A stretch of DNA of 49,060 bases from Hyphochytrium catenoides (taxonomy: Eukaryota > Protista > Hyphochytriomycota), in NCBI GenBank assembly GCA_900088475.1, contig FLMG01000641.1, positions 1 to 49,060 of the forward strand, in the 5' to 3' direction. Positions 4,945 to 46,390 of this stretch are shown piece after piece; the stretch's first letter is position 1; every line of letters begins with the position of its first letter. The notes under the pieces were generated by a model that was given only the letters and a program-made list of their open reading frames with translations, made no database searches and was not told the DNA's origin. The translations under genes were made by a program, and so were the position numbers.

Positions 4945-6355
4945 TCTTCTCCTGTTGAACATTAAATAAATATAAGTCATCTGTGCAGAAGCGCTGAAAG
5001 GAGATGAGCGAGCTTAGCGAGAGCAGACACGATTAGCAGGAGGAAGAGAGAGAAAAGAAAGAGAAGAAGGAAAACGAGGAGAAGGAGGGAGAGAGAGAGA
5101 AAAGAAGATGAAGAAAGAGCGTCTGTATTTCTTCTCTAGCTCACCTCACCAGACTTTAGGGGCACTGATAGATCTGGGAAAGTTGGTATTAGAGCGATGG
5201 TCTCTCCCTGTCTCTCTCATTATCTCTCCTAGATTTACTTGAAAGGAGGTATCGTTATCATTTCCTTTTCTTTATTAGTTGACAACGGGGAAAGCGACGG
5301 TACGGTGGGAGGAAGAGTGAAGAAAAATGGAAGAAAAGAGTGGAAAGGTGAGTTTAGCATCTCCACTTCCTGGGCTACGTACTCGCTCTACTAGTAGTAC
5401 ATGAGGATGTGTTGCAGCCAGTCTTAATCTCCCTTAGAAGACTGTTAGTAAAAAGGAAGAAAGGTGTTATATATGTGCATCTGGCTGGACGCTTGACTAT
5501 AATATTCTGAGTTACGAGGAGCTGGCACATTCATCTCTTGGAGCACGCCCTACTACGAGCAGCTGAACAGGCGAGAAGGAGGAGCCCAGCAAAAAAGCAT
5601 CATATCTCTGTCTCCTTCGCTTTGCCTTTTCCTGGATACAGTTACATCTTCTTTCTCCCCTTTCTTCATAGATTTCGTTCCAAGGATGGTGGTCTGTTCA
5701 GTAGAGATGACTTGGCGATAAGCTTTGTTGTGAAAGAGAGTCCTTATGATCACGTCCTCCGCATATTTTCAACTGCGAAAGAGAGTCCTTAGGGCTAGGG
5801 GAGCCGGCACACTGAAGCGACGACTTAGATAAATAGCCCTGCTCACTCTCTTCTTACATGTGATTTGGTCGTCTGCTTTCCTCCTCGATTAAGATAGCAT
5901 CTGTCTTTAATTTTCAGAAAATAATCTGCATTAGTATCTGCGGCTACCTCTCCTCTCTATGGTATATAATGTCATTGTCTCCCGTCTATCTACCTCCATG
6001 TTCCTGTTACGTTCTCTCTATGTCTATCCCTTCACCTTCATCTTCAGCTTCTTCTCTTCCTCCTGCTTGTCGGCCTCGTCTCTTCCTTCATTCCTCAATT
6101 CTTTTACTCTGCCAGGGAGGAGAGAGGAGAGAGTGACTGGCGAGTGCACCCTAACCCTCACCCTTTTAAGACAAATTATTAAGTAATTGCCCTAAAATGG
6201 CTGTACCTTATATAGGTGTGCGCCTACTTTTTTCTTGGTTTGTCCCGTTAGTCTGTCTACTTACAAGGTTTTGCACGGAGATGATATATCTCCTGTAAGA
6301 ATTTTAGAAAGTCTCTAACTATGGGAGGGATCGACTGAATCTAACTCCTCCTTCA

Positions 6356-6398
6356 GCCTAGCCCTAACCCTAACCTCTAGGACATGTCACCCTAACCT
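6356..6398. repeat. Short interstitial telomere-like tract
   Basis: gcctagccctaaccctaacct...accctaacc, at the boundary between the repeat zone and the first gene. Confidence 0.5.
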
Positions 6399-6730
6399 CC
6401 CACACCAGGAATGTCAAGCGCCAGTGCATACATCCTTCTGCCCTTCTCACGACATCCCGCTGAGCAGAAGAGGTAAAGCAGATGCCCAGGAACTATTGAC
6501 TTCTTGATCTCAGATTAGAAACAGCGCCGCAATATCACAAACCACTCTAGCGCTAGAGTTCGTAATTATCATCTTGGCTGTGGATTAGAACCAGGTAGAG
6601 GAGCTCGCTTCCCGTAGACGAATGAGTTTATCCGTGGAGGCGGACTGCCTCAACCCTTGCTCAGTTTCATCCAAATCCTGCCGTCTTGCTGCACCCAAAT
6701 TCTAGAGATAGGTTTTTGACTAGTCAATAT

Positions 6731-9700
6731 TTAGCGAATAGAACGTTGAATGGATAAGCGTACCTCTTCGCTGGGCGGCATGCCGATCTGGGTGGTGGCC
6801 AACATTGATGCAAGGTGTGCGCTCTCCTCATCAACAGTCAAAGGGAGTGGGGGAGGAGGTTTGCCGCCATGGACGTGTCCAGCGACTTTGAAAGTACATA
6901 GAACACAATCTACCGATGGCACAGTCTGGTTGGGCTCCGGTTTGCTTTCTGAAGGTACTTCATCCTTTTCTATACTTGGCAGGTTATTGGTTCCTAGCCC
7001 TTCGTGCCGGTGACCAGAAACCTTAAACTTGCACAAGACGCATTCCTCTAAACAAAATTGGTCAAGGGACGAGGCAACGCTCAGCTAGGGACGTAAATAG
7101 AGTGGGAGTCTCTTGACACTTGAGGCTCTGCCAAATCCCACCTTTGACTGGTCCAGAGTCCATTTGCGTTGTACGCTCCATACATTGACCCTCCAGGATT
7201 AGCTTCTTCGATAATGGCTTGTCGATGCAAGGGGCCAACGGAGTTTTTCCATCATGTACATGTCCAAGTACATTCAGCTGACAAAGCGTGCACTCTGCAA
7301 AACGTTAAAACAATTGTCAACCTAAGCATTGCACCGGAAGCGAGATTCTCACCTTCGTTCACGTTAACAAGTAACTCCATGCTGTTCGATCGAGACCGGG
7401 TTGCAGCCATGTTATTACTGGCATCTGGACAAGGTCACAGATTCCTTTAGGCTCTTCCTCTACGCGGGGCTTGATGTTATCTGAGTATCCTACCTTCGTC
7501 GAGCCCGCTATTTTCCGTGCCTAAACGGTTCTCATCCTCAAATGCCGCGGTATCTTGCCGGCTGGACGTGTTGAGATTTTCTGATTCCGCAGTATCTTCA
7601 TCGATGCCAGATATGGTGGGCAGGAACCTTGAGGCCTTCCTCTTAGCTAAACGACCTCTTCGATTGGCATTTCTCCCTGACATCGGAAGCTCGTGTGACT
7701 CTTCTGGGTGATGTTGACTAGTTCTCCTTGCTTCCTCTTCTTCTTCTTCCTGAAGAGTTGACTCCGTCGATTCTCTAGGAACACCTGGCCTACAAATTGC
7801 AAACGCTGAGGATACTGCTTTTTTGGCGTACGGCTCCTTTTGGGCGCTAGAGATGACTCACATGTCACTTAATTCAATCTGAAGAAGCGAATCCGTAAAC
7901 CTTCGAACCATTGGAACTCCTCTACCCCCTCTACCCGGCAGCTTAGGCTCTGGTTTGAAGACTTCGTCAGGAAGGGTATAGTCTGGAACCTCCTCTATCT
8001 TCATTCGCTCTCGTCGCCTTGCATAAATAATTTCTCTAAAAGGGCCTGTAAAGACGTATTTCATGGCCCTTGCCGAGTAAGGATACTCCTCAAAGCCATC
8101 GTTCTGGCCCTCTTCCAGATGTCTTCGTGCCTATTGGATGTCGACGGTGAATCTCAAAGAACATTACTGCTGCCTGATGGTGATGTGGACAAGACCCTAC
8201 TCACTTCCAACTTTTTCTGGAAAATCAGATCAGCATCAGAGCCTTCAATGAGGGGAAAGCCAGGCCTAGGGTGCTTGCACCCTTTACCGACGGCTTTCTG
8301 GCGAACAGGAACCTCGTCAAGGTCGATAGAAGCACGACGTTTCAGTTTCTCGTATCGAAAAGCCTGGTACTGGTCGGTAGCTGGACCGCTAGGAATTTTG
8401 CTGGTTATTCGCTTCCACCTTTTGAGGGACTACAACCGCTATCGGTCCCTTACCTTGGGTTCGGTAGATCAAAAACAATGCAGGGATGGCACGGCTGATA
8501 CTCGTCATCACAAACTGAGGCGTTGATGTAGGTCGTGTAGCCGTCGCTACTCACTCCATAGGACTCATGCACTAACATGATTGGAGACAAAATCGGTAAA
8601 CGGCGAACGTAGAGACATAGCAAGGCGGCTTACCGTGCCCAAACACGTGGAACTTGGGCCGTAACCTAAATTGCACTTCATTCAGTAAATTTACACATCC
8701 AACATGTTCTGTCTCGCAGACGATGTCGCCTCGGCCGAGGGGAGGAGAATGGGTAAGGAGAACATCGATGTTGTCAGGAATCGCCCGCCACTTCTTTGCA
8801 AGAGCATCTCCACGGGGTAAGTTGAAAGCCCAGTTGCAGAAATCAGGCTGCCACGGCGACCTAAAGAGCAACAGTTAGAAGACATTAGTATAAACCAGGC
8901 CAAAGCACTGTCCCGCCTATGGGGAGGCCGGCCTCCGAGTGACCTGGCAGCAGCCGTTTTCATGGTCCAAAGTATATATAAGAATTATTCTAATAAGGAG
9001 GTACAAAAGAAAGCATACCCGTATATCCGAAAGCCATTTATCACCACCAGCTCGTCCTCTAAATAGACGCAGTTGGAAAGTAGGGATCGGACTTCCTCAG
9101 GATCTAATGCAAAATGGACGCTTTGAACTTGCTTCTACATTGTGCAAACCTCTAGTCAGCTTTTCCTCACCTTGCTTCTCTTTGTGACCATATTTAAGGT
9201 AGTGTCTGGCGTAGTATTCTGGCTGGAAGGTTGATTCATGGTTGCCAGCGACCACCACTTTATACTTATGAGGCAACTGCCGGAGCCACTTACTGAAGGC
9301 AATCACCTACCGTAGAACCCTTTAAGAAGCACGTAGATACGACTATAGCGCAGTGTGTCTGTCTTACCTCTTCTTTCTCTCCAGTGTCAGTGAAGTCACC
9401 TGCACAGGAGAAGATGGAACAAGGCAATAGACTCGTGTCAGAGCATAAAGGAGAGAGAGGTCCCTGCTCACCTAAGACAGGGTCTAGTTCTAACCCCTAA
9501 GCTTACCAGCGTGCAGCAACACATCCCCATCAGGCACTTTGGCGTGTTCATGCAAACCGTGGGTATCTGATATACAAACAAAGCGCGTGTAGCCTGACGG
9601 GCAGGGTACGGATGGATCTACTGCTTCGACCTTCATGAACTTTTGAAACGGTTTGAGCACTTCCCAAGCCCCGTTGGGCTCATTTGCGTACTCCAAAGCT

Positions 9701-9944
9701 TCACGCATGCTTTGAGCAGCAGCATTCTTCCAGAACTCTATGATCCCAGACGGGTCATGCCCGTCTGCACGTAAAGCACTTTCAATCATCTGTCGGGAAA
9801 GTCCAGCTAAGGATACACGTAAGCACTTCGGCTCGGTTCGAAAAGCATCTTTAGAGACCTACCGTTGAGCATCCGAAGATACTTATTGTCGATGCGATCG
9901 AAGGGCTCTAAAACCCGAAGGCTCTCGCTTTTTGCTGGGGGCAT
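6731..9944 (-). CDS. Calcineurin-like metallophosphoesterase (MPPED1/2, 239FB family) with a long C-terminal extension
   Basis: Spliced translation: MPPAKSESL...RFVCISDTHG...DVLLHAGDFTDTG...VVVAGNHE...YLEDE..INGFRIYGSPWQP...LLTHSPPLGRGD...HVFGHVHESYG...YINAS. The frame continues through a phase-compatible GT-AG intron (CCA AG|C GGT) into further exons and ends at the stop at 6731. Confidence 0.9.
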
Positions 9945-15700: not shown

Positions 15701-18700
15701 TCCCCATACAATGAAATAACCGCCAATATGTGCCGGCAGATGAAGTACGGAAAGCCGCCAAGTGGAACAGGACGTAACGACTTCCAAGCGAATAGAGGCA
15801 GGGCCCATCGCACCGTCATGAACTCCTTCAGGCTTTCCTCCAGGAGTGTGTCCCTCTCATACTCATTCTGTGTTTTCTTTGCCTGTTGCAACAGCTCCTG
15901 GCCGCGATACTGTAGGAGGTCCCCGAGAGAGAAAAATGACGAGCTCTGGACCCTGAGTAGCTCCGACAGGGAACTCGCCTCCCCTCCGTCATCAGCTACT
16001 GCGGCCATTAGCCGTTCCACTATAGACCTTGCAGCGTCATCTCCCTCGGGAGTTGTAACAAAGTCGGCAAATGTGACCTAAACAGAGCACGCGTCGCACC
16101 AACTACTTAGACATTATAAGTGCAGTCGAGAGTGCAGAGAAGCTCCCAGCTTGTCCATATAGCAGAGCTTAGGGTGTCGTCAAGAACATCCGCCTTACCC
16201 TTGCCAGCAGTTTGCTACCAAAAATCTTGTGCGCTTTCTCTTCCACGCGTGGTGTCGTCCGCTCAACGTAGTTACAGGCAACAATAAGAAGGGATAGGCC
16301 TTCAACACAGCGGACGACTAAGCGATACAGTGATGCAAGGGAGCGTTGTTCCGTCCTAAGGGCATTCTCTTTTTTCACTCTCTCCAGCTGTTCTTGTTGA
16401 GAATGCAGCGCAAGGACTCGGGTAAGAAGATTGCCCCTTGACGGCTTCGAGAAGTCATCAAGCGCTGGATTGTCGTCTCTGTTAATGGCCAAAGCATAAG
16501 GGGTGGCAGTCTCCATAAATCGCTGCAGTTGCCAAAGAGGCTCCTTCATTTCCTCCAAGAGTGACCTAACACCGAAGATTAGAAGCAAAGAACGCAGAGT
16601 GAAAAAGACGTCAATCGGATCTGCTATTCCTGTCTGTCACTCTTTCTACGACTCTCCGCCCTCCAATCTTTCATCAGTTTCCTTCAGCTGATGCTCCTCA
16701 CGTTCTCTTTTACAATTTTGACCTGATGAGGTGAGACCTATCGTCCTCTGCCTTCCTTGCCAAATACGGTGCACGCTTACCTAGTGAACCTGCTCACTTG
16801 TACATTCTCCTTTGGCTTCGTAGGTGCTCCCAACAGGAGTTTCGACGAAACAGACGACGTGCCTTCGGACTTGGAGGGAATTTCTCGTGCGAGGCTGCAG
16901 TTCCAGAGCGGACGAAGAAGGCGACACAAGAAGAGGCACAGCCCATTATGGTGGCCAGACATGTAGATATCATCGTGCATAACAACAGCACTACCCGACG
17001 ACATTGGTCGATAGTCTGAGGCACGGTTGTCGTGATGCCGACAGAAGCATCGAGTTAGTGCAGAGTAAACTACCCTTGGTTCGCTAATGAAAGATAAGGA
17101 CGCAGAGAAACCTCCGGCATAAGCATTGAATGCGAAAATGACAACGCAATAATGACAACTGACGGTCAAGAGGAGTAGTTAGGTAGACAGAGGGGGAGAA
17201 TGGACAAAGAACTTTGCTGGCGACTGGATGCGCTTTGTCTCAAGAGGACGGTCCGGCTTACCCATAACACCCGGATGACCCCCAAAATCGAAGATCGCCC
17301 TAATCGCTCTGCCTTTTATTAATGCCTGGGTCTGAGAGTCAATGCCTCCTGGCGACATCATGGTGTCACTTCTTCCGCTTCCAGTCCCTTTAGCTGAGAC
17401 TATGGAGGTAAAGATATCCCTTGGGACGCCACAGGCAAGAGAGAAGAGCATCGCACAAGTCTGGTCCACCCCAAAATATCGGAAAAAAGTTTCCAGCTGG
17501 TAGCTGTCGTGTTGTCTACTGGCAAGGATCTGGAAAAGATAATCCAGTGGTCGGACTTTGGTCAGCACATGCAATGAACGTGTTGTCAGGCAGAGAAAAG
17601 TAGCTCGAGAGCCGAGGTGCTGCGAAGCAAGGTCATGTAGATCTGGAAGCTGGTTCCTGCAGTGACAGCAAGAGGTATTCACCGGAACAGAAGACGACGA
17701 AGAGCATCAATTCATTAGTCTGTTGTCCTTAATCAGCACTGAGGGCTTTCAGACTGACACGTCAACTAACGCAGACAATTAGCTCATAGCGTTCCTAGCC
17801 CATAACTGCATGAGGCTGAACAAAGGTTACGGGGTTGGAAATGCTAACAGAGGGGAGTATGACGGACGGCACACAGTCTTCAGGGAGCACGCAATAAGAT
17901 GGTCATATTTCCAGGTGGATCAGCTCTAATTGCATCTTACCCTTGGCCGGTTGAAGTGGTTGATAATACGCGCTTGGAGCCAGTGATGAACCCTTGCCCT
18001 TGTAAGTCGGATTCCTGGTATGCATCCGGCTGTGCATAGTCGGGAGCTTCGGCTATCGCCCATACCTTTCCCGGTATAGACACACGGGTCACAGCCTCCC
18101 TAAAGCCTAATCAAGGACAAGTAAAGAGGTGGTGGGTGTTAAGCTCTTCGTTGCTGATCAAGGAAGAGCCTTGAATTGCGGGCTCACCAATCTTCTTGTG
18201 CGTCTGGTATGGAACTCCAACAGATCTATTGGTGATAAGATCCCTGCTTACCGCAACCATGTTGTCTGTCCTCTCTGGCACTGAGTCTGCAAGGAGGAGA
18301 ATGCCGTGACGATAGAAGGAGGTGTAAACGTTGGCAGGACTTTTGCCGGGCACAATGGCAGGAGGAAGACCCTCAAATGGCTCCCTTTGCTCATGTGACG
18401 CAGGAGGATCTACTGTGGGAGGTGGCAATCGTATGTGTACAACCTCTAAGGTAGTTGGGCTTCGCTCTCGACCTGATCTTTGAACATCCATTGGCGGCAA
18501 TCCTGCAGTACCGATGCTACGAGGGTCAAGCCCCTTTCTGTCAATCCCAGCACCCATCAAGGTATTCTGACTCCCTGTAGCCCCCGCATTAAGAGGTACC
18601 AGGGAGGATTGTGGTTCGGGTCCAGGGACTAGGGCTGAAGACGGAAACGTAGTGAAGTAGAAGCGAATGCCTAAAGAGGACACCGCAATGAGGTGCACCG

Positions 18701-42601: not shown

Positions 42602-45600
42602 CTAGCCTTGACTCTCAGCCTCTTCACGCCTCTTTAACTCGTCCTTGATGTTCTGCATGCGCTGTTTCAATTTCTCTAAGACCCCAGCTCGAGTATGAGG
42701 AGGGTAAGACCATTGCAGCTCCTCGCAATAGTGCAAAGCGCGACGGAGATCTCCTGCTTTGCGACATACTATGGCCAAGTTGTTAAGAATGTCTCTCTCT
42801 TTCTTGCACCAGTCGCGGTAGAGCGTTTCCCTTTCTTCTCTCTCAATCGATGGACGTCTCTCTCCTTCTTCATCCTCGTCCTGCATATTTGCAACGACTT
42901 CTCTTGTCTTAAGCACACAAAGTTCGTAGCCCTCAATGGCAGCCTTCAGCTCTCCTTGCGCTGTGTACACTGTGGCGAGGTTATTGAGCGCTCGTGCCTC
43001 TACAAGCTTGTTGCCTGCCAAGGAGAAGATAAAGTGAGGGAGTGAGAAAGGAGTGAAAGGAAGACACTTGACCAGAGAAGAGTTGTAACACTGTTTGTGG
43101 ACGGTTGCTTAGAGAATCATGGGCGGATGAAGGAGAGAGAGGAAGAGAAAAGGCCCAAGAGAGAGATTGTGCAATCAGGTGTTGACGCAGCAGGATGGCT
43201 ACGCACGCAGCAGGATGGCTACGTGCTTCAAGGAATGTGCAGGAACTGAGAAGGACAGGGCCGCGATGGTTCCCACCTCCTTCCCTAGCAACGCGAGTTG
43301 CCTGTTTGAAAAGCTCAGCGGCGAGCTCCAAAGCCTTATCTCCATAGAGCTGGTTCCCGCGATCCAGAAGTTCTGTCGCGGAGACTTTGTCTTCGACGAC
43401 CCCCTCTACCCTCCCTGCAGCTTCCCTCTCTATCTCCCTCTCTTCTATAGCCAATCTTTGCAAGTTCATCCCTAAAACGCTCCCATACGCCGAGAAAGGA
43501 GAAGATAAGCCAGCAGTTGAAACTCCAGTCGCGACGGCTCCATAGGCAACCGCATCTGGGTTCCCTTCTGGTCCTGGCATAGTGGAAATGCCGCCATACA
43601 CTGCAGAACCGTATGACGCGCCGGAGGTGGAATCCACAGATGAGAAAGGAGTGGAGACGGCTTGATATGTGCTTGAAAAGGTAGGTACAGACCCATAGAG
43701 AGAGGCAGGAGACGAAGTAACTATGGAGACCGAACCATACGCGGCATGCCCAATGATAGGGTTAGCTGCAGGCGTTCCTATCTGCCAGAGACCAGAAGGT
43801 AAAGGACATGGCGGTTAGAAACTAGAGCGCGATATCCCGTTCGCTAGCTGCCACGTTGCGGAACCACCACCATGGCCTTCACCAATCCCTTATGGACTCT
43901 ACTGTTACTCTGCCCTGCTCGTCTGTACCTTCTCGCCTCTTTCCCTAGTCCTCCACCTTTCATTTTTCCCTATATCTTGCAGCATATCTCACCATCGGGG
44001 TGCTCCCATAGACTCCGCCACCAGAGGTGAGGCCCTGCCCTGCGTTGAAGTTTGTAGCAAGGAGCTTCTGCGGCCAAGAGGGCCACCGCGTACAGCGAAA
44101 TATGCAAGTCAGATGTATAGCGAAGTAGCCGACTATTGAGGGAAAGACCGCACCAGAGAAGCGAAGAGTGGGACAAATCGAGTGTCAAGAAACTGATTTA
44201 CCGGCAGTGCGTGGCCTGCGGAGTTTTCTGAGGGGTTGTTACGAGCCTCTTCTCTGAAGCATTTGGAGAGGTGAGACAGAGCCTGAGGGGTGAGTAACAC
44301 CATTAGTCATGTGACCGAAGGAGCATATTGCGACGACCATAAAAGAGAACCACCTCCTTAGCCACCGGAGGTGGGAACGGTCAGCAGCATATCTAACAAA
44401 GGTCAGTGGAGGGAAGCCTGGCTCTTCTCCTTACCGGAAGGCGAAGAACATTGTCATTTCTGACAACAAAGTCTGTTATAGAGAAAAAAGATGGCTCTCC
44501 CGGCCTCAAAGGGCAAGACAGACCGTAGCCTCCCTGCACAGACAGAAAGCGCAATCTCAGCTGAGCACAAGTGAAAAGTGGCTGGGCATGGCAGTTAGAC
44601 GGTCTAGGATTCCCACGCAGGGTGAGAGCTTGAGAGCTCGGCCCATGAAGAAGCGAAGCAGATGCAAACTGTGTATGCAAGGACAGGACATGTGTGGCAA
44701 GGAGACAACACAAAGGCTTCCCTAAGAACCGCCCCCTTAGCGCCTTGGACAACACCTAGATCGATGACAATGTTTTATTAGGCTGACAGACTTACCTCAC
44801 CGATGTTGTGCAGGAGAGAGTGCTTTATGGCCCGAGCTGAGCGTGGACCGTCCACAGCTTCCACTGTCACGCGAGTCAGGACGAATTTGGAGGGCTGGCT
44901 GTCCCCATAGCGGATTAGAAATTGGCCTGCACGGGCAGTTGTGAGACATCAGAAGATAACGAGTATAGTCCAATTCACAACCGCCTCACTCATGCTCCCC
45001 TATAGGTACCAGTGAGAGTAGCGCAGAGCGAGAGAGACGGCTAAAGAGGGAGGAGAGCGATCCTTACACGGCAAAGAGACGGCTACTGTTGAAGGTATCA
45101 GAAGCGTCGAAGGGCCGTAAATAGAAGAAAAGATGTAGCTACAAGGTAAAAGGTGCGAACAGGAATATCGAGTTACCAGGTGTCTTCTCCTGCAGTATGG
45201 ATTCTGCCTCTAAGCGCGATAGGCGCCCATGGAACCACGGAGCCAGCAGCCCGTCCTGCACTAAGGCCACACTTGCCTTTCGAACGCAAGATGTCAGTCA
45301 GGCGCGTAAGACATAGGCTACCACAAAAGAACGAAAGCCTTAAGGACCTGAGCCAAGTTGAAAAAGATGGACGGGTAGGAGAAGAGGGTAACATGGGAAT
45401 GCAGAGAACGGAGCTAAGGGGGCAGGTATCGTCGATTGGACCATGTTAAGGAGTGACATCCTCTCAGGTATAAAGAGAGCCCTCCCTCCTTACCTTCTTA
45501 AGACAGACTCTGAAGGGCCCAAATCTGTCAAGAAAGAGGCCAAACTGTGGCCATAGGCATATTAGAATAGAGGCATTCTTTCTCCTTGGTTTCCGTTCAC

Positions 45601-45625
45601 GTACAACAGGCAAGAACTCTCTCTG

Positions 45626-45675
<50 letters not shown>

Positions 45676-46390
45676 GGTTGCTCTCTCGCTTCAGCATGAC
45701 CATAATTTATCTAAGTTCTTACCTGTTCTGGGGTGACTCCTTCGTTATCCTGAGCGTCCAGTGCATACTTGATGATGAGTTGAAGGTGCTCTGGCAATCG
45801 GTCAGAGGTAAAGACCCAACCGCAAGCTTTCTGAAGTCAGTAGAGGAGTTTACATAACAGAAGGGGAGCCGTCAGATGTTTAGCACGGATGGAGGTGAGC
45901 GAACATCGTTCTCAGTAGTAACCGGAGAGTTGAAGTGAGCGTCCATCAAAGTCACGCTTACGAATAACCTCTATCACTCGACGAACACCGAGAGAGAGAG
46001 AGAGCCAGATAGGTCATCATCCACCTTCTAAAGTTGGGACGGAGGGTGTGGGCTGAGAGAAGCGGAATAGGAACATGGCAAGTGAAAGAAATACTCGTGA
46101 TAGAGGATGAGGACGAGTAGCAGATGGGATGTGTAGCGAGGAAGGATACAGAGAGAGACAAAGGACAAGGAGAGGCAAAGAGTATAGCGCGCTTACCAAG
46201 AGTCCGTCAAAAAAGATGTCATAATGCACCCATTCGCCAAACTGATGGCGCTTCCTGCAGGAACCACAGAAAGACAACTAAGGGCCGACCTCTTGCATCC
46301 TGAACTAAGATTGTTATGGCGGTACCAGAACTCTCTGCCTTCGATATCTCGAATAGCCGCAACAAAGTTGTTGTTGGTTACGGTGCTCAT
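42602..46390 (-). CDS. Cbl-type EF-hand + SH2 + tyrosine-motif array + TPR protein
   Basis: Spliced translation: EGREFWKRHQFGEWV...YALDAQDNEGVTPEQFGLFLDRFGPF (EF-hand-like); PWFHGRLSRLEAESILQEKTPGQFLIRYGDSQPSKFVLT...IKHSLL (SH2); a YG[S/A/G]x-rich linker; TPRs EARALNNLATVYTAQGELKAAIEGY and ILNNLAIVCRKAGDLRRALHY. Confidence 0.85.
45628..45672. repeat. (CT)n microsatellite, intronic
   Basis: Perfect dinucleotide run. Confidence 0.95.

Follow-up and report, generated by a model that had tools for sequence, protein, structure and literature searches.

A repeated tyrosine motif between the SH2 and TPR domains of a predicted Hyphochytrium catenoides protein: a candidate phosphotyrosine docking array

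STATs and Src-family kinases bind phosphotyrosine tails, whether their own or those of a partner, and the animal adaptors SLP-76 and BLNK (SLP65) combine tyrosine motifs, usually acidic in such adaptors (YE.P), with an SH2 domain. Here we describe a predicted gene of Hyphochytrium catenoides, the product of which would carry an SH2 domain, a linker with eight short tyrosine motifs and three TPRs in a single chain. The gene lies on the minus strand, from 46390 to 42602, of a 49,060-nucleotide stretch (positions 1 to 49,060 of contig FLMG01000641.1, assembly GCA_900088475.1), referred to below as the window. The DNA of the window is eukaryotic, with a G+C content of about 50%.

SH2 domains and tyrosine motifs can build multivalent assemblies. 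SLP65 condensates form with CIN85 (PMC10923291), and nephrin phosphotyrosines together with the SH2 of Nck lower the threshold for phase separation (PMC4700675). Apart from animals and their close relatives, only Dictyostelium has had its SH2-phosphotyrosine pairs studied functionally (PMC2906285, PMC3085826). SH2 signalling there runs on dual-specificity kinases, and CldA, a protein with SH2 plus TPR, is bound by the SH2 of LrrB in a phosphotyrosine-dependent manner without conventional tyrosine kinases (PMC2906285). For an oomycete, there is a report of non-animal "group B" tyrosine kinases (PMC4342544). A literature search on SH2 proteins in stramenopiles returned nothing specific.

The predicted SH2-TPR protein resembles the animal SH2 adaptors (SLP-76/BLNK, and likewise the STAT tail tyrosine and the Src C-terminal tyrosine) in that a single chain has both an SH2 and, in a disordered segment, tyrosine motifs, an arrangement that allows trans or cis binding as well as multivalent assembly. 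It differs in its uncharged linker, its Y-G-S-V motif and its TPR partner domain, and whereas the animal proteins are served by conventional tyrosine kinases, no conventional tyrosine-kinase loop was found here. As far as this comparison goes, the sequence relationship to these adaptors lies in the SH2. With CldA the protein shares a non-animal SH2 and C-terminal TPRs, in a system of phosphotyrosine-dependent SH2 complexes and dual-specificity kinases (PMC2906285). However, CldA is a protein of 145 kDa with a Clu domain, while the SH2-TPR protein is about 560 residues long, and its exons revealed no Clu domain; no tyrosine array has been described in CldA, and homology beyond SH2 and TPR is not apparent from this comparison. 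A CldA-type architecture (SH2 + Clu + TPR) was rejected, as a Clu domain needs more than 200 residues and only about 190, mostly of low complexity, lie between the SH2 and the TPRs. By analogy, the arrangement would work like that of animal SH2 adaptors with tyrosine motifs, and its pairing of SH2 with TPR recalls CldA, but the protein belongs to neither family.

The tyrosine motifs and their linker

The array occupies 43476-44013 (minus strand) and is interrupted by an intron of 211 bases (43782-43992, GT..AG), which splits motif 1 from motifs 2-8. In protein order, the minus-strand motifs are VYGST (motif 1, 43999-44013), AYGSV (motif 2, 43728-43742), LYGSV (motif 3, 43686-43700), TYQAV (motif 4, 43656-43670), SYGSA (motif 5, 43602-43616), VYGGI (motif 6, 43587-43601), AYGAV (motif 7, 43533-43547) and AYGSV (motif 8, 43476-43490). 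The initial annotation had listed these eight pentapeptides in a Ser/Gly/Ala/Thr-rich linker between the two domains. All eight are found on the minus strand where it placed them, the exon reading and Pfam matches put the array between SH2 and TPR, and the first 103 residues of exon 10 have the composition described (S 21, G 14, A 14, V 10, T 9, P 9, Y 7). Its location of the span was correct, with the proviso that coding is interrupted there by the 211-base intron, which leaves motif 1 in a separate exon of 25 codons. That exon (exon 9) is flanked by two phase-0 introns, making in-frame skipping possible, and motif 1 is therefore model-dependent.

The consensus of the array is [small]-Y-G/Q-[S/A/G]-[V/I/A/T] (n = 8). 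In motifs 2-8, the residues at position -1 are A, L, T, S, V, A and A, those at +1 are G, G, Q, G, G, G and G, those at +2 are S, S, A, S, G, A and S, and those at +3 are V, V, V, A, I, V and V. Motif 1, from exon 9, has V at -1, G at +1, S at +2 and T at +3. Gly thus occurs at +1 in seven of the eight motifs, a small residue at +2 throughout, and Val or Ile at +3 in six.

This regularity is not explained by composition. Tyr is followed by Gly at six of the seven tyrosines in the low-complexity part of exon 10, and one in 100,000 composition-preserving shuffles equals that Y-G count; the seven full motifs of the 103-residue part were matched by none of 100,000 such shuffles. A composition artefact as the origin of the array is rejected by this test. 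Tandem Repeats Finder and a direct-repeat search identified no DNA repeat at the array, and the motif codons include all four Gly codons and both Ser families (AGC and TCN), with 43% third-position identity at identical residues. Because the copies use different codons and no DNA repeat was found, we conclude that the motif pattern is maintained at the protein level. The empty repeat searches and varied codons bear out the earlier statement that the array is not a DNA tandem repeat, as codon diversity and the shuffle test do the statement that its copies are conserved at the amino-acid level. We also rejected the array as a translated CT-rich microsatellite, in view of its S/G/A/V/T/Y composition and of an open frame of 277 codons. 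Exon 10 lies inside this frame, which at 3 stops per 64 codons would arise by chance with a probability of about 2e-6.

Disorder of the linker, which the initial annotation had put forward for checking, is predicted by AlphaFold2. In a single-sequence model of exon 10, residues 1-100 have no secondary structure and a predicted local distance difference test (pLDDT) score below 50; helices occupy residues 95-128 and 135-167, motif 8 falling where the first of them begins. Modelling from one sequence gives weak evidence, though here it accords with the composition. The array, the shuffles and the pLDDT together describe a region with several tyrosines and a common flanking motif in predicted disorder. 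Docking arrays such as p130Cas YxxP, ITAM/ITIM (immunoreceptor tyrosine-based activation and inhibition motifs), CagA EPIYA and nephrin likewise present repeated tyrosine motifs in disorder, and share the principle of multivalency (PMC4700675); motifs of the ITAM/ITIM type also have a hydrophobic residue at +3. The p130Cas, ITAM, CagA and nephrin arrays, unlike the present linker, have been proven to serve Src-family or related kinases as substrates, and they lie mostly in proteins without an SH2, whereas the motif here is a different one and its phosphorylation is something we infer.

The SH2 domain, the TPRs and the phosphotyrosine toolkit

All searches, family scans and folds on the SH2-TPR protein were made exon by exon, each piece apart. 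The SH2 is encoded by three minus-strand exons. Exon a (45177-45270) carries the start of the domain (WFHG...SR..EAE) with the alphaA arginine, exon b (44796-44926) the FLIR strand with the invariant betaB arginine, the central sheet and a His in the betaD position, and exon c (44435-44533), a 33-residue piece without a family match that was placed by frame and splice sites, the end. The acceptor of exon a is uncertain, lying either after 45264 (start 45263) or after 45249 (start 45248), both in frame. Exon a matches Pfam PF00017 over profile positions 1-18 (17.1 bits, E 0.006; gathering threshold 21 bits), and exons b and c have no Pfam match as separate pieces. We attribute the score below threshold to the splitting of the domain by introns.

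The genome scanned comprises 61 Mb in 4759 contigs. Exon a was the fourth and last SH2 candidate in the scan (15.9 bits). It aligns at E 2e-6 with the SH2 of contig C573, which is itself above threshold, and exon b matches the same domain in BLASTP (10/19 identical, E 2e-5) and, in tblastn, the STAT-like SH2s of contig C2975. Both the alphaA arginine (W-F/Y-x-G...S-R..E-A-E) and the betaB arginine (FL[VI]R) are kept, residue for residue with the C573 SH2. A PDB sequence search with exon b gave no match. With reservation, we take the SH2 of this gene to be canonical and predict that it can bind phosphotyrosine.

Exon 11 (42602-43014, minus strand) encodes two TPRs with an acidic insert between them, followed by a C-terminal helix, and ends in the stop codon (42602-42604). 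It scores above the Pfam cut-offs for TPR_1 (38.1 bits, cut-off 27.8, E 1.1e-9), TPR_12 (32.9 bits, cut-off 30.1, E 7.7e-8) and TPR_10 (31.1 bits, cut-off 27.5), which identifies a TPR repeat protein, and AlphaFold2 predicts an additional helix pair at the end of exon 10. Pfam scans of the exons recognised nothing beyond SH2 and TPR, and no hydrophobic N-terminus or membrane segment was seen in the exons read. A STAT, which would have coiled-coil and DNA-binding domains ahead of its linker-SH2 module and a single tyrosine in the tail, was considered and rejected, since only about 95 residues precede the SH2 and the tail has eight tyrosines and then TPRs. Compared with the tyrosine-kinase-binding domain of Cbl, no RING follows, and the N-terminus lacks the length for a complete four-helix bundle together with an EF-hand.

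We identified four SH2 loci in the genome: this gene, one on C573 and two on C2975. The C573 locus (6354-9800, minus strand; L001, L030 and L031) is the closest SH2 paralogue. Open frames downstream of its SH2 (6354-6941 and 7280-7741) read like TPR-type helices, and the gene may encode a second SH2-TPR protein. Contig C573 also contains a gap of N and many CT microsatellites. The two SH2 genes on C2975 (32355-32510, plus strand, L002; 33444-33635, minus strand, L003) are adjacent and divergently arranged on opposite strands. They have STAT-type signatures (GFI..., then PGQFL[LV]RFS), preceded by an F..FW.WF stretch; they look STAT-like, and their products could read the tyrosine array. A classical protein tyrosine phosphatase, split by introns, is encoded on contig C2036 (16533-17760, plus strand, L032; Pfam PF00102, 48 bits), with a WPD loop (WPDHGVP) at 17428 and an AGIGRTG active-site loop at 17723. 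TKL-type HRDxK[S/T/C]xN kinase loops occur 19 times in the genome, against none for a reversed-pattern control; contigs C3996 and C3940 are examples of those with TKL kinases. Judged from these genes, the toolkit resembles that of Dictyostelium and not that of animals.

Docking array and rival explanations

We tentatively read the linker as a phosphotyrosine docking array on an SH2-TPR adaptor, written by TKL kinases, read by SH2 domains and reset by a protein tyrosine phosphatase. This is the most likely reading, and we hold it weakly. The protein would be a cytosolic adaptor composed of a helical N-terminus, the SH2, a nearly uncharged disordered linker, a coiled coil and three TPRs, and the motifs would act as short linear motifs read in a Y to Y+3 register. 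Their tyrosines would be phosphorylated by dual-specificity TKL kinases, which we propose because no conventional tyrosine kinase was found. The phosphorylated motifs could then be bound in trans by the protein's own SH2, to give head-to-tail oligomers on the coiled-coil/TPR scaffold; the other three SH2 genes, of which two are STAT-like, would supply alternative readers. The classical protein tyrosine phosphatase would reset the system. The initial annotation had proposed that the protein carries both a reader and its multivalent ligands. The premises of that proposal stand, in that the SH2 arginines are kept, the array is constrained at the protein level and predicted to be disordered, and a toolkit is present; the functional consequences drawn from them stay conditional. 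A stronger form, in which a working SH2, eight pY-G-S-V ligands and the coiled-coil/TPR scaffold make up a self-contained module that a dual-specificity kinase would switch into head-to-tail polymers or condensates, and that evolved independently of animal tyrosine-kinase signalling, we consider unlikely.

Several observations weigh against the docking array. Phosphorylation, SH2 binding and oligomerisation or condensation of the array are all reached by inference. The tyrosines have no acidic flanks, unlike those of most known tyrosine-kinase substrates. As separate exons, the SH2 falls below the Pfam threshold, the SH2 paralogue on C573 shows no tyrosine array, and no orthologue was found in any collection searched. 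A cognate kinase elsewhere in the genome had been expected by the initial annotation, and it would need to be of the dual-specificity TKL kind, as in Dictyostelium: among the 135 PF07714 matches, the best 20 have Ser/Thr-type or TKL-type catalytic loops or none that was recognised, and no loop of the tyrosine-kinase type. Exact back-translated HRDLAARN and HRDLRAAN loops are absent from the 61 Mb, a pattern search that intron-split or variant loops would escape.

A phosphorylation-independent linker fits the data nearly as well. Tyr and three Phe would here be aromatic stickers in an uncharged Ser/Gly/Ala/Val spacer, promoting weak self-association or short beta-type contacts (as in low-complexity aromatic-rich kinked segments, LARKS, or in silk) and adding valency to the coiled-coil/TPR scaffold. 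We regard this explanation as possible, on the doubtful side. The 103 linker residues include ten aromatics (three of them Phe), no K/R and three D/E, with a mean hydropathy of +0.34, as expected of a neutral sticky chain and not of a polyelectrolyte; the chain is predicted to be unstructured, and a coiled coil directly follows. In having recurring aromatics in Ser/Gly-rich, charge-poor disorder it is like the FUS/FET [G/S]Y[G/S] domains and FG-nucleoporin repeats, in which low-complexity aromatics drive assembly and Phe-to-Tyr changes preserve FG hydrogels (PMC4700675). Unlike those, it is not Gln/Asn-rich (Q plus N, 3 of 103), consists to about 40% of Ala, Val, Thr and Pro (42 of 103), has a hydrophobic +3 residue and shows the strict [G/S]Y[G/S] triplet in one motif of eight (SYGS), and it is thus not a prion-like domain of the FUS type. 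The aromatics are spaced somewhat more evenly than at random, although 5.5% of random placements are as even, which is not significant, and no similar region occurs elsewhere in the genome. The preference for Gly at +1 and Val/Ile at +3 is also left unexplained by a generic model. Constraint C-terminal to the tyrosine, with a hydrophobic +3, is the register of SH2 recognition (pYxx-hydrophobic) and is not typical of FUS-type stickers. We favour short linear motifs over generic stickers because the constraint is position-specific and mainly C-terminal to Tyr (Gly at +1, small at +2, Val/Ile at +3), and because the chain itself has an intact SH2 about 45 residues upstream.

A pattern fixed by position between -1 and +3 suggests recognition as a peptide, and the reader could also be something other than an SH2. 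The motifs might be bound by the groove of the protein's own TPRs, for autoinhibition or chain formation, or by a partner that recognises unphosphorylated Y-x-x-hydrophobic. TPR domains bind extended peptides, and the TPRs here are of the TPR_1/TPR_12 type. However, we know of no TPR ligand that resembles the motif, and the tyrosine-containing TPR ligands known to us are acidic, whereas this linker is almost uncharged. Sorting signals of the Y-x-x-hydrophobic kind act in the tails of membrane proteins, and the exons read contain no membrane segment. We judge a non-SH2 reader to be quite unlikely. Equally improbable is a flexible spacer without function, its motif a relic of some old internal duplication whose DNA has since drifted: low-complexity linkers are common, no orthologue or paralogue has the array and motif 1 rests on a small predicted exon, but drift that erased the DNA similarity should have erased the five-residue pattern too, and Y, G (+1) and V/I (+3) persist with different codons under an extreme shuffle test.

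The searches for related proteins cover both the array and the TPRs. A protein word search with the 277-codon frame, scored on its exon 10 part, found no match among proteins of 152-485 aa. HMMER with exon 11 returned 650 matches, of which the best 150 are generic multi-TPR proteins, none with an SH2 signature; the few matches that were read looked bacterial. The SH2-TPR protein itself was not among the matches, and on that ground the library seems to lack this genome and its near relatives. One HMMER match with 11 motif-like matches was rejected as an array, as these reflect the TPR consensus (AYQAAL). Metagenome scans with exons 10 and 11 and scans of genome and viral contigs with exon 10 gave no match, and in the ESM Atlas TPR features alone were recognised, with scores below 0.9. 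Against this genome, exon 10 matched only itself. A two-motif DNA pattern had five matches over the genome, one other of them in frame and not an array. The enrichment of YGSV arrays across the proteome that the initial annotation suggested looking for is therefore not seen; the exon 10 search and the two-motif pattern found no similar array elsewhere in the genome. At present sampling, the SH2-TPR gene looks lineage-restricted. The other in-frame match, on contig C2951 (11512-11561, plus strand, L027), is the sole other YGSV pair in frame in the genome (YGSV, nine residues, AYGSV) and lies in a frame of 105 codons.

A protist protein in which an intact SH2 is combined with eight copies of a constrained tyrosine motif offers a concrete hypothesis that can be tested with peptides. 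Under the docking-array reading, pY-G-S-V is a candidate ligand sequence for a non-animal SH2, and the linker is a substrate candidate with which to look for the kinases that make phosphotyrosine in the absence of conventional tyrosine kinases. Should the motifs instead be unphosphorylated stickers, the protein would be an ordinary scaffold with an unusual linker.

Exon model and sequence surroundings

The gene is predicted, its exon model being a reading of the DNA sequence alone (frames, splice sites and phases). Three-frame translation and GT..AG boundaries give a spliced minus-strand gene of about 11 exons, with the frame kept at every junction. From its N-terminus, the chain begins with a short region and continues with the SH2, the linker (about 128 residues), the coiled coil and three TPRs.

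Four short exons encode the approximately 95 residues N-terminal to the SH2, and as pieces these had no match in Pfam. Exon 1 (46326-46390), with a proposed ATG at 46390, has 21 codons and 2 bases and a donor GT at 46325-46324, in a phase that fits exon 2. Exon 2 (46197-46254; 19 codons and 1 base) encodes an N-terminal helical region and is supported by AG/GT boundaries and frame continuity. Exon 3 (45723-45830; 36 codons) belongs to the N-terminal region, and its short piece has no Pfam match. Exon 4 (45494-45544; 17 codons) directly precedes the SH2 and is in frame only with an acceptor at 45545. C-terminal to the SH2, exon 8 (44202-44282; 27 codons) encodes a spacer without tyrosine, exon 9 (43993-44067; 25 codons) the start of the linker, and exon 10 (43277-43781; 168 codons and 1 base) the 103-residue low-complexity stretch with motifs 2-8, the coiled-coil helix and the first TPR-like helix pair. 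All of these exons are on the minus strand.

Exon 8 weakly resembles the tail of one STAT-like SH2 gene of C2975 (L002:1651-1731; 37% over 27 residues, E 0.16), with a Tyr in the STAT-like gene at a position where the SH2-TPR gene has Leu. A long (GA)n microsatellite (45625-45690, minus strand) lies within the intron that separates exon 3 from exon 4. Runs of CT/GA abound in this genome and produce spurious open frames rich in Leu and Ser.

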